From positions 7,863,434 through 7,903,435 of the forward strand of contig NC_069005.1 of assembly GCF_001194135.2 (NCBI RefSeq): a stretch of DNA of 40,002 bases, read 5' to 3'. Under the pieces are notes generated by a model. It saw only the letters and a list, made by a program, of their open reading frames with translations. It searched no databases and was not told the DNA's origin. Shown one piece after another: positions 2,221 through 37,676 of this stretch. Each line of letters begins with the position of its first letter. Within the stretch, counting starts at the first letter, position 1. The DNA comes from Octopus bimaculoides (Eukaryota). The translations under genes and the position numbers were made by a program.

Positions 2221-3780
2221 AGTATATATATAAATGCATACACACGCACATAATTATCAGCCTGCTGTTCTGCTTTTGGTCTTTCCACTTATCTTGGAGT
2301 CAATGATGCTATTCTGCCTCCCTTTCCCCAGCCAGTTTTGGGGGCCTTAAAAAAGAGCCATGCATACTAGACTTTCTCTTCTGCCTTCATCACAAAAAAG
2401 CAACAACTCATCTAAGTTTTTACAAGTATTTATTAATTTAACAATGTGGTTAGGAATAATATGTTTAGATTAATGTTCCCCCATCATCAAGTATGTCAAC
2501 AGTTTCAAAAGCTATAAATGAATAATAACTTTGTAACTGTATTTAAGAACTCTTGTAAACAAAACAGTGGTAAAAAGATAACTGGAGTGGAAATGTAGTG
2601 GAGATTGAGTTGGAAGAACTAAAGGGTTGTCAGTGGTTAGATAAGACCTAAACAAAACAAAAAAGATGATTATCTAATAACTACTTTTGTTTTTTTAACC
2701 CCAGGTCAACCTGTCTTTTTAAATAAAATTTATCTCAAACTACATTACATTGCATTTAACCGTTTTGTTACCATGTTTATGGTGAAATATACTGCCTTTC
2801 ATCATCATCATCATCATCGTTTAACGTCCGCTTTCCATGGTAGCATGGGTTGGACGACTTGACTGAGGACTGGTGAACCAGGCTCCAATCTGATTTGGCA
2901 GAGTTTCTACAGCTGGATGCCCTTCCTAACACCAACCACTCCAAGAGTGTAGTATATATATGTATATGTATATATATATATGTATATATATATGTATATA
3001 TATACATACATATATGTATATATATATATATANNNNNNNNNNNNNNNNNNNNNNNNNNNNNNNNNNNNNNNNNNNNNNNNNNNNNNNNNNNNNNNNNNNN
3101 NNNNNNNNNNNNNNNNNNNNNNNNNNNNNNNNNNNNNNNNNNNNNNNNNNNNNNNNNNNNNNNNNNNNNNNNNNNNNNNNNNNNNNNNNNNNNNNNNNNN
3201 NNNNNNNNNNNNNNNNNNNNNNNNNNNNNNNNNNNNNNNNNNNNNNNNNNNNNNNNNNNNNNNNNNNNNNNNNNNNNNNNNNNNNNNNNNNNNNNNNNNN
3301 NNNNNNNNNNNNNNNNNNNNNNNNNNNNNNNNNNNNNNNNNNNNNNNNNNNNNNNNNNNNNNNNNNNNNNNNNNNNNNNNNGTGGTGGGGTAGATAGATA
3401 GATATAAATATTATTTAAAATAGTTTGATTTGGCTCCATGTATTTAAACTGCCTTTGTTTCAATTAAATTTGAAAGTAATGAAGAATTTATTAAATTAAC
3501 TTCGTTATTATTAAACTGGAGTCTGGAATACAAATTAACATGAAATTTTGATGGAGGTTTTAATTTAGACCATTTTAAAACAGTGAATTTGTATCAGAGT
3601 ACCAAGGGTGGTTTCAGGCAGGATGGTATCAAAAAGGGTTAACATGTCACTTCCTTTTTCATTTTTTTTTGACAATAGGAATGTATTATTTGAAAGAGAT
3701 TTAAATGCTTTTTCAAGCAAGCTGAGTAACAACATAGAAGCTATTTCATTAACTTGTAATGCTTCTGTCATACAAAGTTG

Positions 3781-4031
3781 TCACTTTTGTATTGAATCCA
3801 TGTCAGAATTAGTTGGCTGTTTAGGTTTTGAAATATCTTGGACTTGTTCGGTTTTGTAACTTGCATTAGAGACATCATTCCGGGGCTCAACATCACTTGT
3901 TACTAAGATGTCTTTCGCAATACATTCATTCATCAATCCACTGGCATATAGTCTTCTTTCTTTTGCTTCATCAGCTTCCTGCCACATTTGCAGCGGGGAG
4001 GAATGAATCTCAGAACTCAATTCTTCATTAC
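3781..4031 (-). CDS. DIABLO: DIABLO-like terminal coding exon 5
   Basis: Acceptor ttcttttatattttcaaag|. Phase-1 continuation (G)NEELSSEIHSSPLQMWQEADEAKERR...SIQK, with TGA at 3783-3781. Confidence 0.82.
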
Positions 4032-7000
4032 CTTTGAAAATATAAAAGAAAATTCAATTTAAATAGCTACCATTTGTTAAGGTTATCACTACAGATAAGC
4101 AATGAGTTCATGGACGGTTAATGGGTTGGATGGGTGGTGATTAAGGAGCAAAAACACCTGAAATATGTCATATACACCCATTTCTCATTTTTTATCTTTG
4201 ATCTCACCAGATATTGGTTTCAAATTTTGGCACAAGGCCAGTAAGTTTGGGGGAGGGAGTAAGTCAATTATATCAACCCCAGTGTTCATCTGGTACTTAT
4301 TTTATCGACCCCAAAGGATGAAAGGCAAAGCTAACCTCAGTAGAATTTGAACTCAGAATATAAAGAGCAACCAGATATTGGTTTCAAATTTTGGCACAAG
4401 GCCAGTAAGTTTGGGGGAAGGGATAAATCAATTATATCGACCAGAGTGTTCATCTGGTACTTATTTTATCGACCCCAAAGGATGAAAGGCAAAGCTAACC
4501 TCAGTAGAATTTGAATTGAATTTCATCCATAAAAATAGATGAAATGCCACGAAGCATTTTGCCCGATATGCTAACAATTCTGCCAGCTCACTGCCTTTAA
4601 CCAATTTGTCTTCCAACTCTGCCAGTCCCACATCTTAGTTTTGATACAACAACGAGCATATGACTGCACTAACCTGACATAAAGGCAACTTCCGCTAACT
4701 GCATGATTAGCCTGTCCATACTGCTTAAAACCATTTGTAATTTCTGAAGAAGATAAAGAAAGTTAGAGGAAAAATCACTTAAAATACCATATATTTACAA
4801 AGTGAGTGAATTTGGTAGAAGGAAGCGTGGGGGTTGTAAATGAACAGCATTGTCATACAATGACGGTGATGATATATATATATATTCACCACTTAAAAGT
4901 GCATATTGTGTTAGAACTCACAAATACTGTAATATTTACCAAGAGAGAAAAACTCTCATATTTCCTTACCTGGATTTTGTCTTTGCAATCATTTATTTCT
5001 GTTCGAGTGTCAATGATGAGACACCATAATCTTTCCCCTTCTTCATCAAGGCGGCCTACAAATTTCATATAGTCAGAGTAATAATTTATGAGTTTATAGA
5101 TGAGCTGCAAAAAAAAAAAAAATAAATGTATTATTAAATAAGAATGTTCGTGAAAGATCACAACGATTATGAATATAGAATGACATAAATTTTTAATAAT
5201 TCCGCCAAATTGACTTTGCCTTTCATCCTTTTGGGGTCAATAANNNNNNNNNNNNNNNNNNNNNNNNNNNNNNNNNNNNNNNNNNNNNNNNNNNNNNNNN
5301 NNNNNNNNNNNNNNNNNNNNNNNNNNNNNNNNNNNNNNNNNNNNNNNNNNNNNNNNNNNNNNNNNNNNNNNNNNNNNNNNNNNNNNNNNNNNNNNNNNNN
5401 NNNNNNNNNNNNNNNNNNNNNNNNNNNNNNNNNNNNNNNNNNNNNNNNNNNNNNNNNNNNNNNNNNNNNNNNNNNNNNNNNNNNNNNNNNNNNNNNNNNN
5501 NNNNNNNNNNNNNNNNNNNNNNNNNNNNNNNNNNNNNNNNNNNNNNNNNNNGCTTTGTTTATATTTCACAACTATGAAACAAAAACGTATGTAACAATTT
5601 GTCAGTCACCCCACCCCCAACCCGTTTTTCGGACCACAAAAAGGGTTTGGTAATTTTTCTCCTATGCAGATCTCTAATGCAACATTTAAAAAATGAGTCA
5701 ATAAGTGAAAATAACCAATAAACTGATTCCTTATGGGATTTCCCAATCAAATTGCCAGCAAACCATTTTCAGCCAAACCAATTTCAACGGATTTCGCTCA
5801 AATCTGATGTCGATGTTACTTATTTTGGTTTGAAATAAAGCACTTAATCATTTAATAATCCTAGCTTAATCCCTAGCAGCGCCGGGTTATACTGCTAGTT
5901 ATTATTAATATTAAATTTTACTTCTCAGAGTTCTTAATATTACTTGCTCTAGTTAATTCTGTGAGAGTGGACAGCAGCCTGTTGTCAAAGGTCTCATAGG
6001 GTCTCTGAAGGTCTTTGTCCACGAATCATAAGACTTAATATGTAGATGTTAAGATACTCAACACCGAGGTACCAATCCCAAAATCCTAGCTGCCGCAAAT
6101 AGAGCAGATTTTGGGCATGTTCTGCCCACATGTCAATTCCAGTTTCTTAGACATATTTCTTGAACTTGGTCCTTATAACTACTGGGATGACAGGCACTCT
6201 CTTTATTGCCCACATTCTTGCAAATTTCTTCCGTTAGTAACTTGTATTTTTCTACCTTTTCCAGCATTTAGTCACCTATGTGTGCATCCCTGGTTATAGC
6301 AATAATCTTTTTGTCACCTATTTGTGTGTGTCCCAATAGAGTAAATACTAGTTTAGTACTGGGATTGCAAGCATCATAGAATAAATACCAGGTTTACAAA
6401 AAATGTACTGGGGTTGGTTTCTTCAACTAAGCCCTTCAAAGTGAATGCACAGCATGAGCAGAGTCCTGTAACTGAGACAAATGAAAATATTAAAAAAAAA
6501 AACAGGAATGTAATAACTGTCAATGGAAGTCTAAGACAGGAAGGATAGTGTGTGAGAAGAGGTTAGGAATAGATAAAGAGAGGTAGGGAGGGAAAGAGAG
6601 AGAGAGAGAGAGAGAAAGAGAGACAGACAGATAAGAGAGAAAGGGAGAGACAGATGAGAAAAAAGAGAGAGACTGATGAAAGAGAGAAAGAGAGCAAAAA
6701 GAGAAAAGAAAGGTAGAGGGAGAGAGATAGACCAGTGAGAGAGAGAAAGAGAAAGAGGCAGATGAGAAAGAAAGAGAGCAAGAGAAGAATAAGGAGATAG
6801 ATAAGCAGAGGGAGGAAGGAAGGCAGAGAGAAAGGATTATGGGCGCTTACTTGTGTGCATTCATTTTCGGTTTTTACCAGGATACCAAGTGTGACTTCAT
6901 ATAGAGTTGTTGTAGCATCTTTGGTCTTCAAAAATTCATTATCAAAGTCTGGGATGCCGGATAAAGGGATCTATATGAATGAAAGAAAGAAAGAAAGAAA

Positions 7001-10000
7001 GAAGGAGAAAGAGAATAGGAAATTGTGAATTGTACTTCAAAGTATAGCAGGTGATATGAACACATACACTAAACATCAACAGAACACAAACTACTGGGTT
7101 GGCCAAAAAGCCTGTTTGGTTTTTATGATAATAAACTTGAAACATTCTAAAAAGTAGCTTAAAATTTAAGATGTTTATGTCAATGTTAGCCCTAATCCAG
7201 CAGACTTATGGTCAAAGAGGTTCCAGCAAAAACTATTTGATTTGCTTTTTGCTTTTGTTTTCAGAAATAGTATATCTGACTACATAATGCAGTGAATATG
7301 GTATTGATACGATCAGTTGCCATTTCTCTGTAGAAGTGTCCCACACTCCATGAGAGAAATTCGTTCGGGAAATGTAGGCATCTTCGATTATGGATTGGGG
7401 CAGTGCTACTCAAAGTGGTGGTCCGCGGACCGGTGCCGGTCAGCGAGCCATCAGCTACCGGTACGCGGCGAGTTTCCAGAAAAGAAAGAAACATTATAAA
7501 ATCCTTATGTAATATTGTATTATTTGTTAACAAAATAAATATAAGGTAAAAGATATTGTCAACTTTTATTATATTCATTATATATATTAGAAATAATACA
7601 TTTCTAAACCTCTCAGAGAGACTTAAGCAGTAGTGATGCGATAAAGTAGTTGTATACTGCCGGCTTAACGTGACAGTCTCAATAAGGGAATATACTACTG
7701 CTATTTAGCCCTAGGAAGCTGGACCGCTTCCTGTCGGCCTTGACACATTGGTCCAGCTTCCTAGGGCTAAATAGCAGTAGTATATTCCCTTATTGGGACT
7801 ATAAGTTAAGTTGGCAGTATACAACTACTTTATTATATATATTGTTTCCGGTATAAATTAATATTACTAAGAAATATTACCGGTTTGTGTCACATTGGAG
7901 TGGGGAGTGCCGGTACACCACATCATATAGTTTGAGAAGCACTGGATTAGAGAACGATAAGAAAACTGAACCCCCCTTCGACAACAGCTGAACCGCGTAT
8001 CGACGAGGGGAGGCTACTCTTCCTTCGATCTTAGAAAAGGGTTTGTTTCCTCCGCACCACCCTAAAGAAGTAGCAGAGAAGTCGGAAAGAAAAATAATTA
8101 TTTATCGAACGCTGAAAAAAGCGACAAGAAAAGTAGAAATAGCAGGCGTTGAAGAGATAGAGGAATGTTTAAAGGAAGTAACGACATTCTATTACAGAGG
8201 ACGAACGTTTGGCGCGGTGTAGGTGCGTTTCGTTAATGAGAACGAAGTAAAGAAGAAGTACTCCACCGTGGCCTTGAAATCGGCACAGTGGGCACTCTTA
8301 CCTACTTACTCTGACAGACGCACAGCCAGAGTAAGGATAGGGAGAGTGCCACCTGGAATTAACGAGGATTGGCTTGTGGCAGCCATCCTCTACAATACAG
8401 AGGAGAAAGCAGAGATNNNNNNNNNNNNNNNNNNNNNNNNNNNNNNNNNNNNNNNNNNNNNNNNNNNNNNNNNNNNNNNNNNNNNNNNNNNNNNNNNNNN
8501 NNNNNNNNNNNNNNNNNNNNNNNNNNNNNNNNNNNNNNNNNNNNNNNNNNNNNNNNNNNNNNNNNNNNNNNNNNNNNNNNNNNNNNNNNNNNNNNNNNNN
8601 NNNNNNNNNNNNNNNNNNNNNNNNNNNNNNNNNNNNNNNNNNNNNNNNNNNNNNNNNNNNNNNNNNNNNNNNNNNNNNNNNNNNNNNNNNNNNNNNNNNN
8701 NNNNNNNNNNNNNNNNNNNNNNNNNNNNNNNNNNNNNNNNNNNNNNNNNNNNNNNNNNNNNNNNNNNNNNNNNNNNNNNNNNNNNNNNNNNNNNNNNNNN
8801 NNNNNNNNNNNNNNNNNNNNNNNNNNNNNNNNNNNNNNNNNNNNNNNNNNNNNNNNNNNNNNNNNNNNNNNNNNNNNNNNNNNNNNNNNNNNNNNNNNNN
8901 NNNNNNNNNNNNNNNNNNNNNNNNNNNNNNNNNNNNNNNNNNNNNNNNNNNNNNNNNNNNNNNNNNNNNNNNNNNNNNNNNNNNNNNNNNNNNNNNNNNN
9001 NNNNNNNNNNNNNNNNNNNNNNNNNNNNNNNNNNNNNNNNNNNNNNNNNNNNNNNNNNNNNNNNNNNNNNNNNNNNNNNNNNNNNNNNNNNNNNNNNNNN
9101 NNNNNCCGAAATATATATATTTTTTAAAAATCACTGCAATAATAATAATAATGATAATAATAATAATAATAAATCATTCTTTTATTTACTACAGGGACGA
9201 CTAGCATTTGAGGAAGGATTTGTGGCGAGTAATCTGTAATTATAGGACTGAGATAATAGAGATTTCAAATTACCCGCCGGTAATTTGAATGGCGGGTAAT
9301 TTGAAATTGCTACATCGGTGTTACAGTCCCAAGGCTTTAAACACAGAATTTCTCCGTTGAAAGGTATTCAAGTTTTACAAGTACTGAGTTTTTTTGTTTT
9401 TAGAATGGATAAAGTTCTTTTTTATTCTCTTACATAAAGGGTACACATACTTGATTACATAAATAAAACACATCCAAAACCGAAGGATATACAAACATGA
9501 ACGAAGGTAGAAAGAGGAAGAAAACACATCATATCAACGAGTGTCCCAATCGATAATACATTACAAAGTTCAACGGAACGTACTGAAGCAAGACAACACG
9601 TTCGCAGCATTACCACGGGCGAGGCTAAGGCGTTGGAAAAGCCAAGCACCCTCACGAGTATCGTCTGACAGCTCGGTGAAGCGAGCCGTCAATGATAAGA
9701 ACTTCGTCGTTAGCGGCCCTGCCCGTCCAAACGTTTCAAAGGCCACAGGCTGGAAGAAATGGTTCACTGACAAGTCCTGATACTTAAGGATTTCGTTCTG
9801 TTAGACTACAGAAGCAGTGACCCTCCCATTTACCGCAGCATCCAGAATTTGGGAGAGAGCAAAAGAGACACTGACGTCCAGATGAGGGCGCCTACCTCTT
9901 ACCCAGGGACAAAAGGTAAGACCATCTGGTCTCTTCCCGTCACTTCTGGATAATCCCGCCGACTCTAGAACTGAGGGGATATTAATCCGAGCTAGGGCCC

Positions 10001-12003
10001 GCTTAATGATTAAGTTTATATCAGTGTAACGAGCGAAACGACCAGTATTTATTTAGGCAGCAAGACACGCCATGAAGGTCTGTGGAATCGAGGGGCCTAC
10101 CACAGCGACATCTTAATTCTCCACAAATGTCGGCTCCCACTCTGGATATAATGGAGGTGCGGAGCTCATCCACACTGAGTAGACCATCAATGTTGGCCAC
10201 AGGCAGAGCATCGATCAGTCCCCCAGGAATTTCGCACTTGCAGAATAAAATTACATTTCCTTGTACCCGAGGAAAAGTGAATTGGATTGATAAACGACTG
10301 AAGTGGGTAGGGCACAGAGTAAGATTTGACTTTGAGGAAAAATTTTTTTTTCCAAATGCTCACTATCTTACAAAAATTATATCAGCTAAGCAAATGACCG
10401 TCTCTAAAGCATTAAAAACGCTATAACATATTCAGAATACTATTTCAGAAAATTATCACCGTTCTTTTTGAGCCTATAGAAGACAAATTTAACTGGGGCA
10501 AAATGAGTAAGTCAAGAGAAGGCAAATTTGCCTCTTGAATACTCCAGAATTACATTTGAAAAAAAACTCATACACATCAATGTTCATCCCTAAACATCAG
10601 AAAGATCAGAAATGCAGCAAAAATTTGAAATATCTAAGTTAAATGAAAGGGTCATGGAAAATGGCACACGATATAAAATTGACAAAACTCGACTAAATCT
10701 AAAAACGCTATATAAAATATTTTCTATAGCTTCGTCACGATCTGCTGTAGCAGTCCTCTTCCTGTTATATTTACGGACCATACATTTAAAGAAAACAAAT
10801 TATTGAAATTACTTATTACTCATTTTGCCCCAGTTTAGATAAATTTTTTTTGAAAATGATCAAATTAGACATTAGTGTGGGGGAAAATTGACTTGGAATC
10901 CAAGAGAGAAAAGAATATCGATTGTTAATCACCATAAGTTATCCAGATATTTTACTGGCAACTTCAATTACATGTGAGTCAAAGTTGAGGAAAGATTCCT
11001 TGAAAAAGAAATAATGTACTTGTGACCTGACTGTTTCAATCTTTTTCAGCTTCAACAACTTTGTTGATCAATTTTTACTCCCAAAGATGATGCAACAGTA
11101 CGAAATGATGCTTCAATACTTGCAATGTATTGGTCTCAAATAAATAGGGAAAAAATAATGAAAAATCAGAAATTGCTCATTTTGCCCCACTTACAAATTC
11201 TACCCCCACCCCCGCCGCTACTAATGAGCAGCCGGATAGAGTGAAGGGGGTGGGGAATAATACACAGCATAGGTGCAGGAGTGGGTGTGTGGTAAGTTAC
11301 TTGCTTACCAACCACATGGTTCCGGGTTCAATCCCACTGCGTGGCATCTTGGGCAAGTGTCTTCTACTATAGTCTCGGGCCGACCAAAGCCTTGTGAGTG
11401 GATTTGGTAGACGGAAACTGAAAGAAGCCCGTCGTATATATGTATATATATATATGTGTGTGTGTGTGTCTGTATTTGTCCCCCCAACATCGCTTGACAA
11501 CCGATGCTAGTGTGTTTACGTCCCCGTAACTTAGCGGTTCGGCAAAAGAGACCGATAGAATAAGTACTAGGCTAAACAAAGAATAAGTCCTGGGGTCGAT
11601 TAGTTCGACTAAAGGCGGTGCTCCAGTATGGCCACAGTCAAATGACTGAAACAAGTAAAAGAGTAAAGAGAGCAGGATATTGGACTTGATGATAGGTGGT
11701 AACGGAGAGCTGAATGAAGTTGATAATGTGTAATAACCGTGATAGCCTAATCTCAAGTAGAAATAAACAAGAGACAAAAGAGGCCGGTTCTCTGAAAACT
11801 ATCCTCAGTCAAAACAAACCCTTTATTTTGGAACTCACCGGTGTGTTGATGTCACATTGCTCAATATCAACGTGCAGGGTGCTCCGGAGTCGAACCACGG
11901 TAGACGTACCCAAAACTAACCGGAGAGTTTGACTACGGATTAACGGCACACACCTACGAGACACGAAGCTGAACACTTTGGACAATCTAAAGGCAGCTGC
12001 CAT
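3781..12003 (-). CDS. DIABLO: Smac/DIABLO homologue (mitochondrial IAP-antagonist family), 5 coding exons, 246 aa
   Basis: Exons 12003-11839 (165 nt), 6970-6851 (120), 5104-4970 (135), 4743-4674 (70) and 4031-3781 (251). All introns are GT-AG with compatible phases (0,0,0,1), and the total of 741 nt is open. Protein: MAAAFRLSKVFSFVSRRCVPLIRSQTLRLVLGTSTVVRLRSTLHVDIEQCDINTP|IPLSGIPDFDNEFLKTKDATTTLYEVTLGILVKTENECTQ|LIYKLINYYSDYMKFVGRLDEEGERLWCLIIDTRTEINDCKDKIQ|KLQMVLSSMDRLIMQLAEVAFMSG|NEELSSEIH...DMDSIQK*. By eye it aligns with human DIABLO as recalled ([61 protein letters not shown]...AAEAAYQTG). Confidence 0.85.
4674..4743 (-). CDS. DIABLO: DIABLO-like exon 4 (70 nt, phase 0/1)
   Basis: Acceptor ttctttatcttcttcag| and donor TCAG|GTTAGT. 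Encodes KLQMVLSSMDRLIMQLAEVAFMS(G). Confidence 0.88.
4970..5104 (-). CDS. DIABLO: DIABLO-like exon 3 (45 codons, phase 0/0)
   Basis: Acceptor poly-T-gcag| and donor CAG|GTAAGG. Encodes LIYKL...GRLDEEGERLWCLIIDTRTE...KDKIQ, the most recognisable Smac segment. Confidence 0.88.
5895..6290 (-). mobile_element. Degenerate R4/Dong-like 3' fragment in DIABLO intron 2
   Basis: Remnants of VPVIPVV...AARILG and an AT-rich tail; similar in type to 17795-18190. Confidence 0.5.
6560..6835. repeat. Degenerate (AG)n/(GA)n purine tract at the 5' end of DIABLO intron 2
   Basis: Directly visible; begins about 15 nt downstream of the exon 2 donor in transcript orientation. Confidence 0.95.
6851..6970 (-). CDS. 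DIABLO: DIABLO-like exon 2 (40 codons, phase 0/0)
   Basis: Pyrimidine-rich acceptor ctttctttcattcatatag| and donor CAA|GTAAGC. Encodes IPLSGIPDF...KTENECTQ. Confidence 0.8.
7401..7944. mobile_element. hAT-type MITE
   Basis: Termini cagtgctactcaaa / tttgagaagcactg. The 8-bp flanks gattgggg and gattagag match at 6/8. Confidence 0.75.
7641..7833. repeat. Foldback inverted repeat, ~85-bp arms and 24-nt loop, nested in the hAT MITE
   Basis: Arm 7641-7725 is nearly the exact reverse complement of 7750-7833. Confidence 0.92.
8040..8416 (+). mobile_element. Probable LINE ORF1 (RRM-like) fragment running into an assembly gap
   Basis: Reads ...RKVEIAGVEEIEECLKEV...GAV*VRF...RRTARVRIGRVPPGINEDWL, with a stop, resembling non-LTR ORF1 proteins. 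Clade not assignable. Confidence 0.5.
9550..10230 (-). mobile_element. CRE-like (RLE-type) non-LTR retrotransposon 3' fragment
   Basis: Contains the Cys/His segment RCRCG...HGVSC, then INLIIKRALARINIPSVLE..GLSRSDGKRPDGLTFCPW, then FQPVAFETFG...REGAWLFQRLSLA-RGNAA. Frameshifted. Confidence 0.85.
10491..10835 (-). mobile_element. Pogo/Tigger-like MITE (345 bp) retaining the transposase start
   Basis: Perfect 20-bp TIRs aactggggcaaaatgagtaa (10491-10510) and ttactcattttgccccagtt (10816-10835). The minus ORF from 10781, MVRKYNRKRTATADRDEAIENI, resembles pogo HTH-psq transposase N-termini. Confidence 0.75.
11275..11671 (+). mobile_element. SINE family B copy, 170 bp into DIABLO intron 1 (antisense)
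   Basis: Same sequence as 1833-2220. Confidence 0.9.
11839..12003 (-). CDS. DIABLO: DIABLO-like exon 1: mitochondrial targeting presequence
   Basis: ATG in a good context (gtaATGG on the minus strand). The first ~40 aa are Arg/Ser/Leu-rich and contain no acidic residue. The exon ends CCG|GTGAGT (phase 0). The ORF-track start at 12045 is TTG, not ATG. Confidence 0.8.
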
Positions 12004-12313
12004 TACTTCGTTTCTTACAAGACTTTGATCAAGGAAAGACGACAATGCCGAGCAGACATTTTCACAAATAAAGTCACTTCACAGATTCGTACTTTACGTT
12101 TTTTTTTTTTTCAAATATATTTTGAGTATCATTTTTAAATTATGAAAGTATAAAGAAACGTTGTTATATTTCATTTGTCTTTTTTTTAATTTTATATTTC
12201 TAGCAAAACAAAATCCCAAATATTTCTTTAGACAAGTTTTCCAATAAATACGGAACTAGATGCGACTCAGCTTATACTTACAGCAAAGTCTGTTGTGACT
12301 GCCAGCTGATAAC
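12004..12313. promoter_or_regulatory. Putative bidirectional promoter plus both 5' UTRs between the DIABLO-like and PCYOX genes
   Basis: Only 310 nt separate the two divergent ATGs, so both TSSs probably lie in or overlap this interval unless there are unseen upstream non-coding exons. No specific core motif is claimed. Confidence 0.7.
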
Positions 12314-12395
12314 ATGTCGAAGTTGCTCCTGTCAATCACATTGCTTCTCTACCTAGGCTTTGTATTGGGTTTTGACGAAGAATTACCTAGAATCG
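12314..12395 (+). CDS. PCYOX1: PCYOX exon 1: signal peptide
   Basis: aacATG. Encodes MSKLLLSITLLLYLGFVLGFDEELPRI, a hydrophobic signal peptide. Donor G|GTAAGT joins in frame to exon 2 to give PRI-A-IVGAG. Confidence 0.9.
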
Positions 12396-15300
12396 GTAAG
12401 TTTACTTGACAATTTACAATTACAATAGTAATTTTTTTCCCCTCCTGCTTTCTCAGTCAACAGACGTTTCGTGTCAAGACATGCTTGTTTATTCTTTTTG
12501 GTGGGAGTAAGTTCATTCGTATTCATTTATACACAACATGCACGCAATAGAGAGCCCGTGTGCTGTTACTAGACAGGTTAAAATTAAGGAAGGGATACAT
12601 TGGATAACGGTGGTCATGCATATCCCTAGTCAGATGGGATGGTCATTGCTAGAATGCTTTTAAACATTAGTTTGCTCAGTCATCGGTAATCTGGGACTAA
12701 ACAACTTCAATAACATACTGTGTTCGAAACCACGAAGGAGCCTCCGCCAGTTAGAAATCGTAGCCAGTCGCACTCAAATTATATCCTATTCGCTTAAAAA
12801 AAAAAAAAGGCGCACATTCGCAAGAAGAAAACAAAACCAGACGGACACATTGGATAATGAAGTCCAATATACACCGTCTAAAAAAACGGGATGGCCACGG
12901 ACGGAATGTTTTTGTCGTAGGGGTGCTGACTAGGCTTGTCCTGCAGTTTGACAACAGTCACAACAAATAATGGAGTTCGATTCTGTTCAGTTTCTATTCT
13001 AACATCAACAGGTGCGTGACATCTGTTGCTGTCAAGTGTTTCCCTTTTGGGAGGGAACTTTTACGTGGTCGCTCGATTTGCGAGAAACAATAGCTAAATC
13101 TCTATAAATTCACATTGTCTACACTTTGAGAAAAGAGCACGTTGGATAATGCAGCCCTGGTAGATCTAACAACTAAATCTCCTTCGTTCCAACAAAAGAA
13201 GGACACGTCGACTATTGTAGATTTGTACACATACCGGCTTTGAGTAAAACAAAACCGAAAGGAACAGCTTTGAATATTGTGTCTGAAGAAAAAAATAAAT
13301 AAATAAAATAAAGATAGCCGAAGCTGAAATGTTCAGCCAGAGTCGCCCTGATGTCAACAACATATGCTTGCCCCCTCATGTTCACCACTCTACATTATTG
13401 ATAAAGTAGGCGCAAAATTACCCAAAGTAGTGAACCTGGAAATTTTGATAAAAATGCCGTGGCTTATCTATATGAAGTACATTTAGTACCCACTTAGCTT
13501 ATAATTTTTCGTACAACAGGCGAAAGCGTACTTTTGTTTTTTTTCTTCAGTCGTTCTAATTTGTGTAAGATCCTTCTTTACGTTCCATAGGCTCGGGCGT
13601 GGCTTTGTTGCTTCCCGACCACATGGTTCCGACTTCAGTCCCGCTGCAAGGTACCTTGGACAAGTGTCTTCTACTATAGCCCCTGGGGTTAGCGTGCATT
13701 TTTTTCCATATTCGTTCGCTACACATCATTTTACACCCATTACACTATTTTTTTTTCTTTCAGTTTTGTGACCGGTTGTTAAAGTTAGGTTATCGGATCG
13801 TGTGAATTTTCCGAGTTCTCTCCTCACCCCACCCCGTTCGTCAGCGCGCATTTTTTTGTTTTCATAAATTCGTTTACTACACATTATTTTACACCTCTTA
13901 CACTTTTTAAAAAATTTNNNNNNNNNNNNNNNNNNNNNNNNNNNNNNNNNNNNNNNNNNNNNNNNNNNNNNNNNNNNNNNNNNNNNNNNNNNNNNNNNNN
14001 NNNNNNNNNNNNNNNNNNNNNNNNNNNNNNNNNNNNNNNNNNNNNNNNNNNNNNNNNNNNNNNNNNNNNNNNNNNNNNNNNNNNNNNNNNNNNNNNNNNN
14101 NNNNNNNNNNNNNNNNNNNNNNNNNNNNNNNNNNNNNNNNNNNNNNNNNNNNNNNNNNNNNNNNNNNNNNNNNNNNNNNNNNNNNNNNNNNNNNNNNNNN
14201 NNNNNNNNNNNNNNNNNNNNNNNNNNNNNNNNNNNNNNNNNNNNNNNNNNNNNNNNNNNNNNNNNNNNNNNNNNNNNNNNNNNNNNNNNNNNNNNNNNNN
14301 NNNNNNNNNNNNNNNNNNNNNNNNNNNNNNNNNNNNNNNNNNNNNNNNNNNNNNNNNNNNNNNNNNNNNNNNNNNNNNNNNNNNNNNNNNNNNNNNNNNN
14401 NNNNNNNNNNNNNNNNNNNNNNNNNNNNNNNNNNNNNNNNNNNNNNNNNNNNNNNNNNNNNNNNNNNNNNNNNNNNNNNNNNNNNNNNNNNNNNNNNNNN
14501 NNNNNNNNNNNNNNNNNNNNNNNNNNNNNNNNNNNNNNNNNNNNNNNNNNNNNNNNNNNNNNNNCGATGTTGGTGTGTTTATGTACCGTAAGCTAGCAGT
14601 TCGGCAAAAGAGACCGATAGAATAAGTAGTAGGCTTACAAAGAATAAGTCCTGGGGTCGATTTGTTCAACTAATGGTGATACTCCAGCATGGCTGCAGTC
14701 AAATGACTGAAACAAATAAAGGAATAGTCCCCGTTGTGGTCCACCCACTTCTTCCATCGGTGTTGCAGTATTAGGATCCCATTAGTAAAGAAGTTTTCAT
14801 TTTGTTGGTTTAAAAAGTCATCAACAGCAGATGTGACGTCAGCACTGCGATGCTGGTTCCCAGTTAAGTGTTTTTTTTCCATGTCAGGAAACAGATAGTA
14901 TTGAGATAGGGCCAAATCAGGAGAATAGGGAGGGTAATCAGCAAGTTCAAAGCCACAGTCATGCACAGCAGCCATTGAAACTAAGGACTTGTGTGCTGGA
15001 TTATTGACCTGATAAAGCAAGACCCCTGTTGTCAGTTTTCCTGGGCGTTTAGATTTGATAACTTTTCATAACTGCCTGAACAAGTTGGCATGTACTTTCC
15101 ATTGGTGGTGTGGCTCTTTTGAAGATAGTCAATAAACACAAAAAATTCCCTGCAGATAAAATGACCTTGGCCTTCTTTGGTGCAGGTAAAGAAGGGTGTT
15201 TCTACTGTATGAATGTAGCCCTTTAAGGCTAAACCCTTTTTCTACAAGTACTTGATAACACCACAGTGCCAAATTTTGTCGAGGAGCCTGGTGTAGCCAC

Positions 15301-18300
15301 CTGGTTCACCAGTCCTCAGTCAAATCGTCCAACCCATGCCAGCATGGAAAGCGGACGTTATACGATGATGATGAAGTCACTTCTAGTTACTTTTGAAGTT
15401 TTCTTTAAATAGTCAGATGTCAGTTTACCTGGAAAGAAACAATGCAGTTATTAATAAGATGGGTTGAAATTAATGCATGCAAGATTTCACAGCACTAGCA
15501 CCACTCCTTCATAGTCAGCTTATGAACTTTTCAGCCTACCCCTGTGTATATATATCATCATTATCATTGTCTTTTATGCATGCATTGGTAAGACAGTTGA
15601 CAGGAGCCAGCCAGGAAGAAGACTACCCCCAGGTGTCTGTTTGGCAGAGGTTTTGCAGCTGGATGCCCTTCCTAATACCAAATCTCTCCACAGAGTGGAC
15701 TAAGTGCTTTTACATGACACCAGCACAGGTGATGTCAGTTTTGGCATGATTCTTACAGCTGGATGCCATTCCAAATGCCAACCACTTTACAGTGTGGACT
15801 GGATTCTTTTTACTTGGTACCAGCAGGATAACCAAGTAACTTGCAAGACAAGGAATTTTGAGAGGGGAAGGGATCTTGTGTTAGATGATGGCAAAGGTTG
15901 AACGCTTTGATATGATCTGACAAGCTCCAGGACTGCGTTGAGCTCCAATGCCATTGTTTCTGCAAGTGGTTGCCCTTCCTAATGCCAACCACTTTACAGG
16001 GTATACTGGGTGCTTTTCAAGCCACTGGCACTTAAAAATTTAAAAGAAAAGGAAAATGTCCCTTCAACTAAGTGGGGTTAGTATTTAAGAGAAGATGACA
16101 GCTTTAAGTTGAGAGGCTGAAATATGATAGGGAGACAGGCACAGGTGTCTATCTTTCTCTCTCTCTCTCTGTACAGAGGCAGTACAATGCTACCCTGAAT
16201 TATATAAGGGTGGGTGGGAGTAGCTTGAAAGAAGATAAAGATGGTAGTGATGGTGTACGAAAGTGAACTCTCAAGGTACAAAAAGGTGAGCATGTGCGAG
16301 GATACAGACAGTAGATGGGGCGGGGGAAGAGATGGTAAGTAGCTTCATAAGACTGTGTGGGAGAGTAGCAGATAGTGAGAGATTAGGTAAAGGTGAATGT
16401 AGTGTGTGATGTATCTGTAGAATGCTCAGTTGGCCCCATATCTATGAAGCTGTTATGTAATCTAATTGAATGAACTGAAATACATTTTCTTGAAACTGAT
16501 GGTGGATCTGTTTATTTTTACTTTATATGGATTAGAATACACCCTCATTCACCTAATGTCAAAACATTTTCTCTTTCTCTCACCACACACATGTGTATGT
16601 TGATGCAAACTGGAAAAATAGACCTCAAAATATGAGCATATGTACATTTTAATTAATATTTAGCAGAAGTAACAGTGACTCAAAGTAATGTCAGAAGAAA
16701 TGCCACTAAGCATCATGCCCAATGTGCAAATGATCGTGCCAGTTTGTTGCTCTGATGGGAGATCTAATAATCGTATTTGTCTGTGTGTCATTCAAGCTAA
16801 AACTATCAAAAGGGGAGCACAACAACAAACCTTGAAAGATAAAAGCTTGATATAATATCTATTGTTAATAAATCTTAACCAGAGTAAAGTTCTTTTTCCT
16901 TATTAACGTGGTTCTATCGGCAGAATCAGAAATAGCATTGGACAAAAATGCCTTGTGATATTTAATCACTTCATTCTATGTACAGAGTTCAAATCCCGCA
17001 TTGATTTCATCTTTCTGGAGTTGATAAAGTACTAGTAATATACTGGGATCTATTTTATTGATAAACCCTTTCCCCAAATTTCTGTCTTTGTGTTTATATT
17101 AGGAACAATTATAATAATAATAATATTAATAATAATAGTAATAATAATAATATTAATAATAATGAAATTATTGTGTATAGTGTTCAGGTGCACTACAACT
17201 CACCAAAGGTGCATGTACAGTAAATAGAATTATGTATGAAAGTCAGGATAGTAAATGGTGTATGAGTCATGATATACATGTGTGTATGTGTATGGACAGG
17301 GTGAGTGGATATCAGGTGTAGTGTTGGCGAATTTCAGGAAGCATGGAGGTTTTAAAGGATGCAGTGTCTCGGCAACTAACAACTGATGCAGGTGGTTTAT
17401 TCCATGCTTCAGTGAGTGTGAAAAAAATGTTTATGAAAGTCACAGGAGCTGTGCTGTTTTCTGACTTTATAGGCATGCCCACATTTGTTAGACTCATGGA
17501 GTTCAAAAAGGTGTTCAAGGTAGTTGTTGGCATGATGGTTTATAATTTTGTGGGTGTTTACTAAGTCAGTTGCCAGACATCGGAACTTCAATGTATCTAT
17601 GCCTTGAAGCTCCAACGTCTGGTAACTGACTTAGTAAACACCCAGTTAATTTTACTTATGCTGTAAAGGTTGATATTATATTTCATTCTTTCAGGGTTTT
17701 AGAAAATAATTACCAGTAGAGCACTGGGGGGTCAGTATTATCGGCTTCCCTGCTTCCTTCAAAATTGCCAGCCTTGTCCTAAAATTTGAAACCATTATTG
17801 TTATTATTTGATGAAAACTCTCAACTTATTTTGCTGGGTATGATGGAAAGTGTCAGCTGTCCACAGCCAGCAGACTAAGGTGACACTTGTTTATTGGTCA
17901 TGCTTCAAGGACTCTGAGAAGAATTCTTGCAGTTCCAAGCAATGCTGGTTTTTGTAAGCGTTGTATCTTTACATTTGTATCATTCTTTCTGATCCATGTT
18001 GGTAGCTGAGTGCTGATACTTCCAAGTGCACCAATTACTATTGCTATCATATCTACTCTCATTGACCACAGCCTTCATATTTCCCAATTCATCGTAGTTG
18101 TTCAGTTTTTCTTCTTTCTCTTTGATCCTGTTGTCACCAGGACACGCTATGTCAATTATCATGCAAGTTCTTTCATTTTTATATACCATATTATTATTAT
18201 TAAGGTGTGAAGGCTTGTGGCATAGTGGTTTTTTAATTTATGCTTGTTTTTCTTAATTGATTAATTAATTTAAAAAAAAAATAATAGTGGGAATTTCGCT

Positions 18301-21300
18301 GTTTAATACTCTGTTTTCCTCTTCAATTCTTGTTTCAGCAATAGTTGGTGCTGGCATTGGAGGCACATCAACAGCTTACTACCTACGTCAACTGTTTGGG
18401 GACCAAGCTGTCATAGATATATATGAATCCAATAAAGTTGGCGGACGTTTGGACTCTTTCGAATTTGATGGAGAATCCATTGAAACCGGTGGCAGCACAC
18501 TTCATCCAAAAAATGCTTACATGCTGAATTTTACAAAGATTTTAGGTAAGGGGTTTAATTTTACTTATTCCATTTGTGATTGTAAATGTAGGGTTGTTGT
18601 TTAACCCCTTAAGTCAGCCCTATTGAAGGAGACCAACACTTAGCCCTTTAGCATTTAGATTATTCTATCAAATGTAATGCTTATGTACTCTCATTGTTTT
18701 AAATTAATCGGGTATCATTTTGCAACTTCAATGCATCAATGATATGATTGTTTATTTTTAGAAAGGAGATGGCCAACTAGATAAGACAATGGGATCACTT
18801 GCTTAGAGGTTGTGAGCTCAAATCCACAGCAGTTGTTTCATTGCTTCTCTTAATATACTATTCTTGTACTTCATTGTACAACAGCTTCTTTGGATAGTCA
18901 TTCTGTTGACAAAATTTGTAAAATAGGTACACTTTTGAAGTTTGTTAGTTTCGAATATATTCCACATTGATTTTGCCTCATCTCTTGAACTTAGCTGTAG
19001 ATTTGAAAATATTTCTGCTTGCCAGGCTTGGAAGCAAAACAGCTTGAAAGCAATGGATTTGGAATATATGATGGCAAAGAGTTTCTGTTTAAAACCAGTA
19101 GTTACAAAATTATAACCATCCTGAAAGCTTTCTGGCGTTATGGAAATGATCTGCAGAGAATTGCAAATTGGATTGACGATTTGATTACCAAAAAATTTTG
19201 CCGGTAAGTTAAAAAAAATTTTTTTTTATTTCAGTGCTTTTTTTTTTGCACATTTTTTTACTGAAGGATTCAAATATAATCGCTCAAAATTTCATTAGCC
19301 TTAACTTTGGAAAGCAGTTTTGTATATCAATCTATCTTTTGTTGAGGAATGTTATGTTTGAAGCTATTTTTTATTGAGATATGTCGAGTTTACTGAGGCA
19401 ATGTGATTTGCAGAAAATACCAATTCCATTTTTTGATAGATATTTAACATCATTACTAGAATAACCATTAGATTTAATTTCACAGTGAAAAGGCTAAAAT
19501 TTGTTAATTACAACATTAAGAGAATAAGTAATGTCATCAATGTCATAATCAACTTCGTTAGTGTAATCATCTTCATTATTGTTGCTATCATTAGTTAATC
19601 CTTTTAAACACAGGAATCAGATATAACCAATCAAAATTTCATTACCCTTAACTGCAGAAAGCAGTTTTATATCCCAATCTATCTTTTGTTGAAGAATGTC
19701 GTGTTTGAAACTATTTTCTGTCTGGATCCAGTCTTCAAATGCAAAAATAGGCAAACCCTAACTTAGCAAGCATTATATACTAGTTGGCTGTTCCTGTTTA
19801 AAGGTTAAAGAAAATTTAGCTACTATTTTTTAGGACCTTGAAAGACTGCATAGGGAGTCATTGCTCCAGTATGTTTCTTATTCTGCTTGCTAATATTCAG
19901 TTTTCTATCGCTCAACCAGGATCTACAATCATCAATTGAAAGGGTATGCCTTTACCACTGTGAAAGATCTGCTGTTATCCATGGACCAATTAATGCTAAA
20001 CTTAACCACCAGACCTTTAGAAGAAACTCTGAAAGAAATGGGCTTTTCTGACCGCTTTATTGCAGAGCCTGTTACTGTGGCTGTCCGAACAAATTATGGC
20101 CAGACAGTCAATATTCAATCATTTGCTGGTGAGTACTTAACACAGAAAACAATCGGGAAGCTGTTCTATGATTGGCTTTGTTTTTCTTACTTTTCATTTT
20201 TCTAGTTTTTTTCAAATTTTTAATGTTTGACACCAAACAACCTGAGGCTGCCCTTGGTCCTATGCCCTAAATTTCCTGTTTTAAAGTGATCTAAATTAAA
20301 ACCTTGCATCAATATTTATTAATTAATATTCCATATTTCAGTTTAATTATTTATGGCAATGTTTGCTCTGCTTGAGAAGACATGTCCAACTAAGTAAAAC
20401 TGTGGCTGTCCATATGTACAAGTATGTCCTCTACATCCCTCTCTCAGCTGAGAGGCCTTTCCCTTGAGGGCTTGTGGGTGATGGTGTCATGTAAAAAGCA
20501 CTTGTGCTGGTACCACATAAAAGCAGCTGTGCTGGTGTTACACAAAAGTGCTGATGCCATGTAAAAGCACCCATGCCAGTGCCACGTAGAAGTACCATGT
20601 AAAAGTACCCATGCTGGTGCCACGTTGAAGCACCCGTGCTGGTACCACGTAAAAGGCCCTGTCCCAGTGTCACATAAAACTCGCACGCACACACTCACTT
20701 GAGCGACACTCGCACGCACACACTCACTCGAGCAACACTTGCGCACACACTCACTTGAGCGACACTCGCACACACACTTACTCGAGCAACACTCGCTCAC
20801 ACAACATTCACTGACTCACTCAGGATTTTGTCAGATCCCCCCCACTCATTCACATGATGCTTGCTCACTCTGAGAACACTCATACACCATTTACTCACTC
20901 CAACACAACACATACAGGCATTGTGCGTGTGTGTGTGTGTGTGTATGTGTATGTGTGTGTGTGTGTGCTTACAACACTCCAGCACATTTTTTTATCTTTA
21001 ACTTTGTAACATTTCTCAAACTATATTTTACCGTTACAGGGTCTATCTCACTGGCAGGTATGCAACCTGGTTTGTTTGCCATAAAGGGTGGAAACAAGCA
21101 GGTGGCCGAAAAACTATTAACAGAGTCTAAAGCAAATTTTATTCACGCCGAATTAAAAAAAATCTCACTGTTAAAGGAACACGATTCAATACAATATGAA
21201 TTATTCTATAAACCCCACAACTCGACCGAAAAAAACTCCATGCAAAATCATATATACGATATTGTCATAATTGCTATGCCACTCAATCAGGATAGCAAGG

Positions 21301-21809
21301 ATATTAAATTTGAAGGATTTATATCACCATTATCCTACAGCCAACCTTTTTACCGAACTGTGGCCACATTCATTCAAGGAGAGGTAAACGCCTCGTTTTT
21401 TGATTTTGAAAAAGAAGGCGACCTGCCGAATAGTATTTTGATTAACGCAGAACCATACTTCATAAATTCCATTTCAAAGAAACGAAAGAACCTCTGGAAG
21501 GTATTCTCCCGGGAACTGCTAACCGAAAGCGAGAAAAATCTGTTGTTCAAAACCATTGAGAAAACGACCGTCTATAACTGGGTAGCCTACCCTGCTTACA
21601 GCTCCTCTCAGAAGTTACTTCCCTTTGTTCTACACGACCAACTCTACTATGTGAACGCTATCGAAAGTGCTGCTTCTACGATCGAGACCAGTGTAATCGC
21701 TGCTAGAAACGTGGCACTGCTTGTCAAAAACCATTGGTTCAATCTCTTTGATTATATCGATGAAATACCAAATGAATCAGAGGAAAATAAAATAAAAGGA
21801 GAATTGTAG
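12314..21809 (+). CDS. PCYOX1: Prenylcysteine oxidase / lyase (PCYOX1/PCYOX1L co-orthologue), 5 coding exons, 481 aa
   Basis: Exons 12314-12395, 18339-18545, 19026-19203, 19920-20128 and 21040-21809, all GT-AG with phases 1,1,2,1; 1446 nt open. Family motifs: PRIAIVGAGIGGTSTAYYL (FAD-binding), VGGRL, IETGGSTLHPKN, GIYDG, RIYNHQ, RTNYGQ, GGNKQV, YDIVIIAMPL, WKVFS, WVAYP, LYYVNAIESAAS. C-terminus KGEL. Confidence 0.95.
14722..15215 (-). mobile_element. Degenerate mariner transposase C-terminal fragment
   Basis: Translates YPPYSPDLALSQYYLFPDMEKKHL...LQHRWKKWVDHNGDY, matching the mariner YSPDLAP-x-D motif and C-terminus. Confidence 0.85.
17110..17625 (-). mobile_element. CR1/L2-like LINE 3' end
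   Basis: Translates LKFRCLATDLVNTHKII...GHAYKVRKQ...KHFF...WNKPP.SVV...FK, the typical CR1/L2 RT C-terminus. A (TAA)n repeat lies at about 17110-17165. Confidence 0.8.
17795..18190 (-). mobile_element. R4/Dong-like non-LTR 3' end in PCYOX intron 1
   Basis: Translates IIDIACPGDNRIKEKEEK..Y, then IVIGALG...LQKPALLGTARIL, followed by a short (TAA/CAA)n tail. Confidence 0.8.
18339..18545 (+). CDS. PCYOX1: PCYOX exon 2 (FAD-binding GxGxxG)
   Basis: Acceptor ttcttgtttcag| and donor TTAG|GTAAGG. Encodes AIVGAGIGG...MLNFTKIL. Confidence 0.96.
19026..19203 (+). CDS. PCYOX1: PCYOX exon 3
   Basis: Acceptor tttctgcttgccag| and donor CG|GTAAGT. Encodes GLEAKQLES...GIYDGKEF...WRYG...KKFCR. Confidence 0.95.
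19920..20128 (+). CDS. PCYOX1: PCYOX exon 4
   Basis: Acceptor ctcaaccag| and donor GCTG|GTGAGT. Encodes RIYNHQLKGYAF...RTNYGQTVNIQSFAG. Confidence 0.95.
20490..20802. repeat. Two adjacent minisatellites in PCYOX intron 4
   Basis: Degenerate ~26-nt unit (gtaaaagcacccatgctggtgccac-like) at 20490-20680, followed by about 4 copies of a 29-nt unit (ctcgcacgcacacactcacttgagcgaca) at 20681-20802. Confidence 0.85.
21040..21809 (+). CDS. PCYOX1: PCYOX terminal exon 5
   Basis: Acceptor ttttaccgttacag|. Encodes GSISLAG...GGNKQV...ESAAS...KIKGEL, with TAG at 21807-21809. Confidence 0.96.
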
Positions 21810-36377: not shown

Positions 36378-37676
36378 TTCTAGGCTAAAGACCGCCAAAT
36401 AATTACAAAACCCTAACCCTAACTCTAAAACCCAAACCTTAAAACCAATACAAACGCACGAACGATGTCATAAATAACAGTGACAAACGAAATATATCAC
36501 CATTTTGTACTGTTGCATGATCTTTAGAAGTAAAAATTGGTCATCAGAGTTATTTATGTTGAAGTTGAGGGTGTCGGAAACATAGCCAGGTGGCAGGTAT
36601 TTTCTTTTTTCAAGAAGATTTTCTTTTAACTTTGACCTGATTATAAATGAGATTGCGGCTCTTTTTTAAAACGGGGGCCACATTTTTCATTAACGAAACA
36701 CTTTGAAACTTGGAACACTGGTAGAATGTGTCATATAAAACATCTTTTTATCTTAGTCTTCTTAAAAAAAAAAAGAAATCCCTAAGTTATTCCATGTGAA
36801 AGTTGTCGTATTTCTNNNNNNNNNNNNNNNNNNNNNNNNNNNNNNNNNNNNNNNNNNNNNNNNNNNNNNNNNNNNNNNNNNNNNNNNNNNNNNNNNNNNN
36901 NNNNNNNNNNNNNNNNNNNNNNNNNNNNNNNNNNNNNNNNNNNNNNNNNNNNNNNNNNNNNNNNNNNNNNNNNNNNNNNNNNNNNNNNNNNNNNNNNNNN
37001 NNNNNNNNNNNNNNNNNNNNNNNNNNNNNNNNNNNNNNNNNNNNNNNNNNNNNNNNNNNNNNNNNNNNNNNNNNNNNNNNNNNNNNNNNNNNNNNNNNNN
37101 NNNNNNNNNNNNNNNNNNNNNNNNNNNNNNNNNNNNNNNNNNNNNNNNNNNNNNNNNNNNNNNNNNNNNNNNNNNNNNNNNNNNNNNNNNNNNNNNNNNN
37201 NNNNNNNNNNNNNNNNNNNNNNNNNNNNNNNNNNNNNNNNNNNNNNNNNNNNNNNNNNNNNNNNNNNNNNNNNNNNNNNNNNNNNNNNNNNNNNNNNNNN
37301 NNNNNNNNNNNNNNNNNNNNNNNNNNNNNNNNNNNNNNNNNNNNNNNNNNNNNNNNTATATATATATATATGTATATGTGTTTGTGTTTGTCCCCCCAAC
37401 ATCGCTCGACAAACGATGCTGGTGTGTTTACGTCCCCGTAAATTAGCGGTTCGGCAAAAAGAGACCGGTAGAATAAGTACTAGGCTTCCAGAGAATGAGT
37501 CCTGGGGTCGATTTGCTCGACTAAAGGCGGTGCTCCAGCATGGCCACAGTCAAAAAGACTGAAACAAATAAAAGAGTATTAGCAATCAATATTCTTTTCT
37601 CTGTTGGATTCCTAGTAAAATTTCTTCCAACACTAATGTCTAATTTGATCATTTTCAATTTTGAAAAAATATCTAA

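Follow-up and report, generated by a model that had tools for sequence, protein, structure and literature searches.

A Smac/DIABLO gene of Octopus bimaculoides whose product has no Ala-type IAP-binding motif

A gene of the Smac/DIABLO family, with five exons and a product of 246 amino acids (aa), lies on the minus strand of a 40,002-nucleotide (nt) stretch of the Octopus bimaculoides genome (NCBI RefSeq assembly GCF_001194135.2, contig NC_069005.1, positions 7,863,434 to 7,903,435 of the forward strand), which is called the window here and is numbered from its first base. In this paper we describe the gene, its relatives in other animals and the N-terminal part of its product, with particular regard to the IAP-binding motif (IBM), whose place a first-pass annotation of this DNA had assigned to the tetrapeptide N-T-P-I at the junction of exons 1 and 2. 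The parts of the gene that bear on this question are the following.

11839 to 12003, minus strand: exon 1, M1 to P55, with the ATG at 12003 and the donor CCG/GTGAGT, as in XP_014789768.1
11884 to 12003, minus strand: presequence, residues 1-40, basic and acid-free, with 8 Arg/Lys, strongly conserved in octopods
11872 to 11883, minus strand: S41-T42-L43-H44, invariant in four octopods and lying on the IBM columns in a profile alignment
11839 to 11847, minus strand: codons N53-T54-P55 (AAC ACA CCG), the end of exon 1
6971 to 11838, minus strand: intron 1, GT..AG, phase 0, 4868 nt with an assembly gap included
6851 to 6970, minus strand: exon 2, I56 to Q95, 40 codons
6959 to 6970, minus strand: codons I56-P57-L58-S59, the start of exon 2, in which L58-S59 match the family L-[ST]
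4970 to 5104, minus strand: exon 3, L96 to Q140
4674 to 4743, minus strand: exon 4, K141 to the first base of the G164 codon, phase 1
3781 to 4031, minus strand: exon 5, G164 to K246 and the TGA stop codon

A tblastn search with a human Smac query found exon 3 alone (E=3e-4). The other exons were located by reading frames and splice sites, with confirmation from the RefSeq protein: the complete five-exon model is a 100% match to NCBI XP_014789768.1 (Octopus bimaculoides, gene LOC106883317, 246 aa). Exon 1 ends in GAG CAA TGT GAC ATC AAC ACA CCG followed by GTGAGT, and the acceptor of exon 2 consists of a pyrimidine-rich tract and TAG, reading ...TTCATTCATATAG/ATC CCT TTA TCC GGC ATC CCA GAC TTT. 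The spliced phase-0 junction is thus ...EQCDINTP/IPLSGIPDF. N-T-P-I is indeed split by the exon 1/2 junction, as the first-pass annotation had it and as the RefSeq model also reads; the limits given there coincide exactly with codon boundaries, the Asn codon beginning at 11847 and the Ser59 codon ending at 6959. The same junction is found in O. sinensis and Argonauta, the join is modelled in four genomes, and in the three genomes that were mapped the reading frame is intact and the splice sites are canonical. The join of exons 2 and 3 is contiguous in the family alignment.

A second, predicted isoform, X2 (NCBI XP_014789769.1), has 192 aa, consisting of a single Met and exons 2-5, and lacks the presequence. 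A scan of the readable minus strand of the window for its first exon (ATG followed by GT) gave weak candidates, none of them with a consensus donor. In human, Smac-beta/Smac-S is reportedly a minor splice form without presequence and IBM that occurs beside an IBM-bearing main form. Isoform X2 of octopus starts at the equivalent exon boundary, but here the main form has no IBM either.

That the gene is a Smac/DIABLO orthologue, as had been assumed, is borne out by Pfam, fold, gene structure and synteny together. The Pfam family Smac_DIABLO (PF09057) matches residues 73-206 with 43.6 bits, the cutoff being 25 (E=3.1e-11), and human Smac chains match at E of about 4e-7, with an identity to human Smac of about 20%. 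An AlphaFold2 monomer model, made with a 30-sequence alignment, has a mean predicted local distance difference test (pLDDT) score of 80.4 and helices at residues 62-108, 116-162 and 166-229, and the product is predicted to fold as an elongated three-helix bundle. Smac homodimers form by way of the N-terminal portion of helix 1. In a Foldseek comparison of the model with the PDB, the best 11 matches were all human Smac, with a probability of 1.00 and template modelling (TM) scores, normalised to the target, of 0.80-0.87. The octopus protein is like human and other vertebrate Smac (PDB 1FEW, 1G73, 4TX5) in its Pfam family, predicted three-helix bundle, phase-0 intron directly behind the targeting region, and basic presequence.

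The plan of five exons with intron phases 0,0,0,1 is common to Aplysia, Lineus, Haliotis and Sinanodonta. In Holothuria and a vertebrate the gene is divided into six exons, but intron 1, intron 2 and the phase-1 intron at a conserved Gly are in common; the extra intron of Holothuria falls in the presequence, and the third intron of the vertebrate stands at a different place. Exon 2 has 40 codons in octopods, 42 in Lineus, 46 in Aplysia and 44 in Haliotis, Sinanodonta, Holothuria and a vertebrate. The four residues absent from the octopod exon belong to its 5' end, in a box of the form P-D-P-x-x-L-[ST], and its shortness would fit either a shift of the acceptor by 12 nt or a deletion of that length in the octopod stem.

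The neighbouring gene upstream adds to this.

18287 to 21809, plus strand: exons of a prenylcysteine-oxidase-like gene (NAD_binding_8 and Prenylcys_lyase, E down to 2e-65)

In 5 species, namely O. bimaculoides (the window), O. sinensis, Argonauta, Lineus and Haliotis, it stands head-to-head with Smac, so that Smac and the prenylcysteine-oxidase-like gene are an old conserved gene pair, and the conservation of this neighbour supports the orthology. The ratio of nonsynonymous to synonymous substitution rates (dN/dS) over the whole gene comes to 0.17 in the comparison with O. sinensis and to 0.16 in that with Argonauta. The most constrained part is the presequence (residues 1-45), with values of 0.08-0.12, and the highest values in the N-terminal half, 0.93 and 0.23, are those of the linker of residues 46-72. 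The octopod Smac gene is intact and is selectively maintained.

Orthologues from lophotrochozoans were gathered by exhaustive HMMER search, and the octopod set consists of O. bimaculoides, O. sinensis, O. vulgaris and Argonauta. Word-indexed protein searches returned 2 clusters for the octopus query and at least five proteins for the 30-sequence profile. Two candidates were set aside. A Logan contig from SRR27666073, the closest non-octopod fragment, carries stop codons ahead of the helix-1 region and is uninformative on the N-terminus; its own search matched only itself. A 1348-aa protein matching query residues 199-233 in 22 stretches was judged, without inspection of its sequence, to be a repetitive-sequence match.

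No A-x-P-x tetrapeptide occurs anywhere in the O. bimaculoides protein, nor in the octopod set as a whole (0 of 4 proteins), and the earlier statement that a canonical Ala-type IBM is absent holds. Residues 5-73 of O. bimaculoides contain no Ala, and in O. sinensis, O. vulgaris and Argonauta the only one is A37, in A-R-L-R. IAP antagonists of the IBM type (Smac, HtrA2, Reaper/Hid/Grim) bind the surface groove of BIR domains and relieve the inhibition of caspases. Neither the free N-terminus A-[VTIK]-[PA]-[FYIV] nor the conservation of the motif, by which such antagonists are recognised, is found in octopods. With the orthologue real and the Ala-type motif missing, the broad reading of an "IBM-less Smac", also put forward in the first-pass annotation, stands.

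The sole Ala-initiated candidate is the N-terminus of the precursor, AAAF, which is part of the presequence. Removal of the Met from M1-F5 (11989-12003, minus strand) would expose A-A-A-F in Octopus or A-S-A-Y in Argonauta; other orthologues start with MAAPI (Haliotis), MSAPI (Lottia) or MAAPA (Lymnaea). In Drosophila, Reaper, Hid, Grim and Sickle carry an N-terminal A-[VI]-[PA]-[FY] that is exposed by Met removal, and the octopod precursor resembles them there, but it has no relation to them in sequence or fold and the residues in question begin a presequence. The resemblance of AAAF and ASAY to Reaper AVAF and Grim AIAY could be that of a common MAA- presequence start.

Among the lophotrochozoan orthologues, an A-x-P-hydrophobic motif after the presequence was found only in Aplysia and Lineus. 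No post-presequence A-x-P-x is present in 11 others, namely Haliotis, Lottia, Batillaria, Littorina, Babylonia, Biomphalaria, Lymnaea, Sinanodonta, Saccostrea, Mytilus and Lingula. Most of the 11 have an uncharged segment of 14-19 residues followed by Ala-initiated candidates (AVAV in Sinanodonta, ASVL in Haliotis), and octopods have neither; Lottia, like Octopus, is without Ala in the relevant region. Outside these 11, Elysia reads AVAF and Plakobranchus AVGF. Since so many other lophotrochozoan orthologues also lack A-x-P-x, loss of the IBM is not special to cephalopods, and co-evolution with cephalopod BIR domains, which the first-pass annotation had offered as one explanation, becomes less likely for the same reason.

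The forms in which the motif is kept are much alike. In Aplysia californica (XP_005110230.1) it reads LC/ATPV, in Lineus longissimus (XP_064634575.1) LC/AQPL and in Holothuria leucospilota (KAJ8049738.1) LC/AVPF. These three have the phase-0 intron 1 and the phase-1 Gly intron as in octopus, and Lineus has the same neighbour gene; unlike octopods, they keep the hydrophobic segment, the Cys and A-x-P-hydrophobic, 7-18 residues before the junction. Vertebrate Smac likewise has an uncharged segment of 16-18 residues ending in ...LC and then AVP[IVF], where octopods have RLR/STLHV instead. Because the canonical motif is common to deuterostomes, a nemertean and a gastropod, it is ancestral, and the fact that Aplysia, Lineus and Holothuria retain it shows that it was lost in the octopod lineage. 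Loss or remodelling of the motif has happened repeatedly, with octopods as an extreme case.

A 2026 survey (PMC13159474) reports 8-11 IAPs in cephalopods and Bruce-type BIRs that are conserved across metazoans and lack residues blocking IBM binding. On the strength of that survey the BIR grooves probably keep ligands, presumably caspases or other IBM proteins. No description of a cephalopod or mollusc Smac IBM was found in the literature, and Euprymna Diablo is merely listed as a transcript (PMC9389742).

The octopod N-terminus differs from that of the IBM-bearing orthologues also in the segment that precedes the motif. Its first acidic residue is D46, so that residues 1-45 contain 8 Arg/Lys and no acidic residue, and on composition a basic matrix-targeting segment appears to be present. 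The longest uncharged stretch of the presequence, LVLGTSTVV, has 9 residues and is bracketed by Arg. In IBM-bearing orthologues the uncharged segment has 15-25 residues and a higher hydropathy and ends in Cys; the maximum 15-residue hydropathy of octopods is the second lowest of the set, with only Batillaria lower. A hydrophobic stop-transfer segment of about 15 or more uncharged residues before the cleavage site is thus lacking in octopods. Human Smac is matured at residues 51-60 by the intramembrane protease PARL (PMC7966987, PMC13434016), and maturation of this type should be impossible in octopods because the membrane-spanning segment is absent.

In its place stands R-L-R/S-T-L-H-V, which is invariant in three species of Octopus and in Argonauta. 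From STLH there are 13-15 residues to the junction and 32 to D73, both within the ranges observed for the IBM, and its R-L-R-S-T context looks like an ordinary presequence-peptidase site. By sequence, RLRSTLHV is a better candidate than NTPI for the processing site and the mature N-terminus.

N-T-P-I does not behave as the position of an IBM in which Ala has been replaced by Asn, which was the central proposal of the first-pass annotation: it is not conserved, it lies at the wrong distances, and alignments put the IBM at residues 33-41. The junction tetrapeptide is NTPI in O. bimaculoides, DTPI in O. sinensis and O. vulgaris and YNPP in Argonauta. Pro55 is the only residue of the tetrapeptide that is invariant among octopods, together with Leu58 after it. 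Residues 43-61 are mostly non-helical in the AlphaFold2 model, with pLDDT values of 55-71, and NTPI is situated about 12 residues downstream of the IBM place, in a disordered and weakly constrained linker. The product of a Logan contig from another sequencing run (93 aa) has an exon 1 that ends in ...EQCDINTP, with intronic VSKKK after it and L31 for V30, so that Asn53 seems to be present in one more Octopus sample or species.

The phase-0 intron 1 is ancient, being found in seven other bilaterian orthologues, and provides a landmark from which distances can be taken. Recognisable IBMs sit wholly in the upstream exon, with the Ala 6-18 residues from the junction: the vertebrate sequence is LC AVPVAE/, that of Aplysia LC ATPVVLE/, that of Lineus LC AQPL and 11 more residues, and that of Holothuria LC AVPF and 14 more. 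N53, on the other hand, is 3 residues from the junction, outside this range, and its tetrapeptide straddles the intron. The IBM Ala is also 27-39 residues before a conserved Asp of helix 1 (D73 in octopus), and N53 only 20 before it. That the IBM of vertebrates comes shortly before the corresponding junction, as the first-pass annotation remarked, is right for the mapped vertebrate, which reads AVPVAE/K, but the distance varies too much among phyla to serve as a guide to residue homology.

Alignments lead to the same place. In MAFFT (30 sequences) NTPIPLS is aligned with P-D-P-x-x-L-[ST], and in a profile of 23 non-octopod N-termini the Argonauta sequence YNPPTLTK falls on the family box PDPTTLTH (NSVSLSN in the vertebrate), while the IBM columns (Aplysia C/ATPV, vertebrate C/AVP) fall on R-L-R/S-T-L-H. 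Residues 53-56 carry no known IBM in either alignment, the motif falling on residues 33-41. The MAFFT alignment of the N-termini is itself inconsistent, with the IBM Ala on octopus T33 or R38 according to species, and residue homology was therefore judged by intron position, distances and the HMM alignment. The Pro of NTPI is better explained, on these alignments, as part of the P-x-x-L-[ST] box ahead of helix 1. In random 33-residue linkers of the same composition [VTI]-P-[IF] arises by chance in about 2% and a looser version in about 16%, and because the family-wide box explains the Pro independently, the resemblance of T-P-I to the motif is no more than chance. By these comparisons N-T-P-I appears to be a chance look-alike in a poorly conserved linker rather than a damaged IBM.

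Intron 1 is not completely read, and contains the following features.

8417 to 9105, no strand: assembly gap, 689 N, wholly within intron 1
11256 to 11672, no strand: copy of a repeat like a short interspersed element (SINE), with at least 8 copies at the O. sinensis locus, at 84-92% identity

The gap is separated from exon 2 by 1.4 kb and from exon 1 by 2.7 kb, and the frame is unaffected by it because donor and acceptor are both in read sequence. In O. sinensis the locus (L001) spans 30.5 kb with 0 N, and its intron 1 (6166-15507) has 9.3 kb. The flanks of the gap are collinear and in the same orientation there: window positions 9415-9206 correspond to L001 10367-10591, and 8062-7917 to L001 11889-12029. 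Between these anchors the counterpart of the gap is about 1.3 kb long, of which about 0.67 kb (at least half) consists of SINE-like copies. A scan of the O. sinensis intron 1 found open segments with A-x-P-hydrophobic only in SINE copies or in sequence that is not conserved in O. bimaculoides, and the gap-free intron 1 of Argonauta hians (L002), of 585 nt, contains no such segment. Candidate hidden exons with A/S-x-P-hydrophobic in the introns of O. bimaculoides, O. sinensis and Argonauta were likewise rejected, all of the matches being SINE copies or unconserved. The first-pass annotation had left room for an extra exon at 8417-9106; none is to be expected there, and a hidden IBM exon is very unlikely, because the O. 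sinensis intron is collinear, its A-x-P segments are SINE-derived or unconserved, and that of Argonauta has only 585 nt.

The SINE-like repeat is about 400 bp long, occurs also at about 4206-4661 and has further copies spread over the Smac introns of O. bimaculoides and O. sinensis. Within it is GGTTCCGGGTTCAATCCCACTG, which by eye is like a tRNA T-arm; ARAGORN found no tRNA gene in the window. Intron 1 has 4.9 kb in O. bimaculoides, 9.3 kb in O. sinensis and 0.6 kb in Argonauta, and the repeat explains much of this difference. An inverted repeat in intron 1 at 7675-7800, of 51 nt with 98% complementarity and a 24-nt spacer, looks like a small foldback element or one resembling a miniature inverted-repeat transposable element (MITE). 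The window has four other assembly gaps, at 3033-3381, 5244-5551, 13918-14564 and 36816-37356. The second of these is in intron 2 and the first past the stop codon, and the coding sequence is uninterrupted. Two open reading frame remnants, at 14670-15020 and 24341-24652 (both minus strand), read ...PPYSPDLA...Y(Y/H)LF..., like C-terminal parts of mariner/Tc1 transposases; neither matched Pfam at E<=0.001.

Our reading, which we regard as probable, is that octopod Smac has kept its helical bundle and its presequence, has lost the hydrophobic segment and the IBM, and does not have an IBM in NTPI. What octopods have lost is the uncharged hydrophobic segment ending in Cys together with the Ala-x-Pro-x that follows it, the two N-terminal features that mark Smac as an IAP antagonist in vertebrates, a sea cucumber, Aplysia and a nemertean. 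The precursor would be imported through the conserved basic presequence and may be cleaved near R40/S41, in the invariant R-L-R-S-T-L-H, which would leave Ser or Thr as the first residue. The mature protein would then have a Ser/Thr start, a disordered linker of about 20 residues that includes NTPI, and the helical bundle, to which the conserved function would belong, with the protein located in the matrix or the intermembrane space. Canonical insertion into a BIR groove is not expected, because an Ala N-terminus is absent, and IAP antagonism would be lost.

Several points weigh against this reading. HMMER left residues 1-70 of Octopus unaligned and aligned only Argonauta through, so that the profile mapping was carried to Octopus through the unambiguous Octopus-Argonauta alignment, and the proposed equivalence of STLH to the IBM comes from one profile alignment and the distances. 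Anchoring by the junction only would set the vertebrate IBM on C-D-I-N (residues 50-53), which overlaps NTPI by one residue. Homology within the linker is unprovable at the level of residues because the Octopus N-terminus is unaligned and exon 2 is four codons shorter. The evidence for the junction consists of gene models and conservation; protein searches recovered no N-terminus of an orthologue from squid, cuttlefish or nautilus; and the sequence may be compatible with a BIR ligand that starts with Ser or is unusual in another way. Whichever anchor is used, the first IBM residue (position 53, 51 or 46) is neither Ala nor Ser.

Were N/D-T-P-I instead a derived IBM, cut after Ile52 and bound by co-evolved cephalopod BIRs, the fit of T-P-I to consensus positions 2-4 and its presence in three Octopus species would be explained, as would Cys50, two residues ahead of NTPI, which is faintly like the C/A-x-P-x of Aplysia, Lineus, Holothuria and vertebrates. 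However, the octopods vary at position 1 (N/D/Y), position 2 (T/N) and position 4 (I/P); Argonauta has neither the Cys nor T-P-I; and no other segment of the N-terminal half is under so little constraint as this one, which is out of the IBM range by both distance measures and without an evident cleavage signal before residue 53. An acidic or amide N-terminal side chain, moreover, does not fit the Ala pocket of BIR domains, and we consider this explanation very improbable. Still less credence can be given to an incomplete gene model, in which an exon in the gap or an alternative splice form would supply the hydrophobic segment and an Ala-type IBM. There are 689 unread bases in intron 1 and isoform X2 is listed with its first exon not located, but X2 adds only a Met, the exon 1/2 join recurs in the four modelled genomes, exon 1 is under strong purifying selection in frame, and, as described above, the introns of O. 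sinensis (gap-free and collinear) and Argonauta offer no candidate. The low identity to human Smac (about 20%) and the several assembly gaps in the locus could be held to indicate a decaying pseudogene or an annotation artefact, a view that the intact frame and canonical splice sites in three genomes, the dN/dS of 0.16-0.17, the predicted Smac-like fold and the synteny make scarcely tenable.

Binding to IAPs through a non-canonical N-terminus, either STLH/TLHV after cleavage or the AAAF/ASAY of the precursor, is unlikely, although it has more to recommend it than the preceding three. STLHV is invariant in four octopods and is placed on the IBM columns by the profile alignment, Arg at -1 and -3 would make a plausible presequence-peptidase context, and some BIRs tolerate Ser at position 1; yet no IBM is known to have Leu at position 3 or His at position 4. 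For the precursor, M-A-[AS]-A-[FY] is conserved in octopods and has counterparts in Haliotis MAAPI and Lottia MSAPI, but MAA- starts are common in mitochondrial presequences, that of vertebrate Smac included, and Ala exposed at a cytosolic N-terminus is usually acetylated. A related and equally doubtful idea is that octopods, and perhaps other molluscs, have re-wired Smac after loss of the membrane-anchored C/A-x-P-x maturation site, for a BIR-free mitochondrial or matrix role of the helical domain or with a new N-terminus, STLH/TLHV or AAAF; in the latter case the precursor AAAF may antagonise IAPs only upon failed mitochondrial import.

We return to our reading that the hydrophobic segment and the IBM were lost. 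Smac is usually defined by its AVPI-type N-terminus, and octopods keep the fold, the presequence and the synteny without that motif; the specific observation of N-T-P-I carries no such weight. For molluscs in general, the annotation "diablo homolog" calls for caution before a working Smac-IAP axis is inferred from it. IAP-independent functions of human SMAC are now under discussion (PMC13434016), and octopod Smac is a natural test system for such functions. Octopod Smac is a real, conserved, IBM-less variant, and it speaks for a conserved task of the helical domain that is independent of the IBM.

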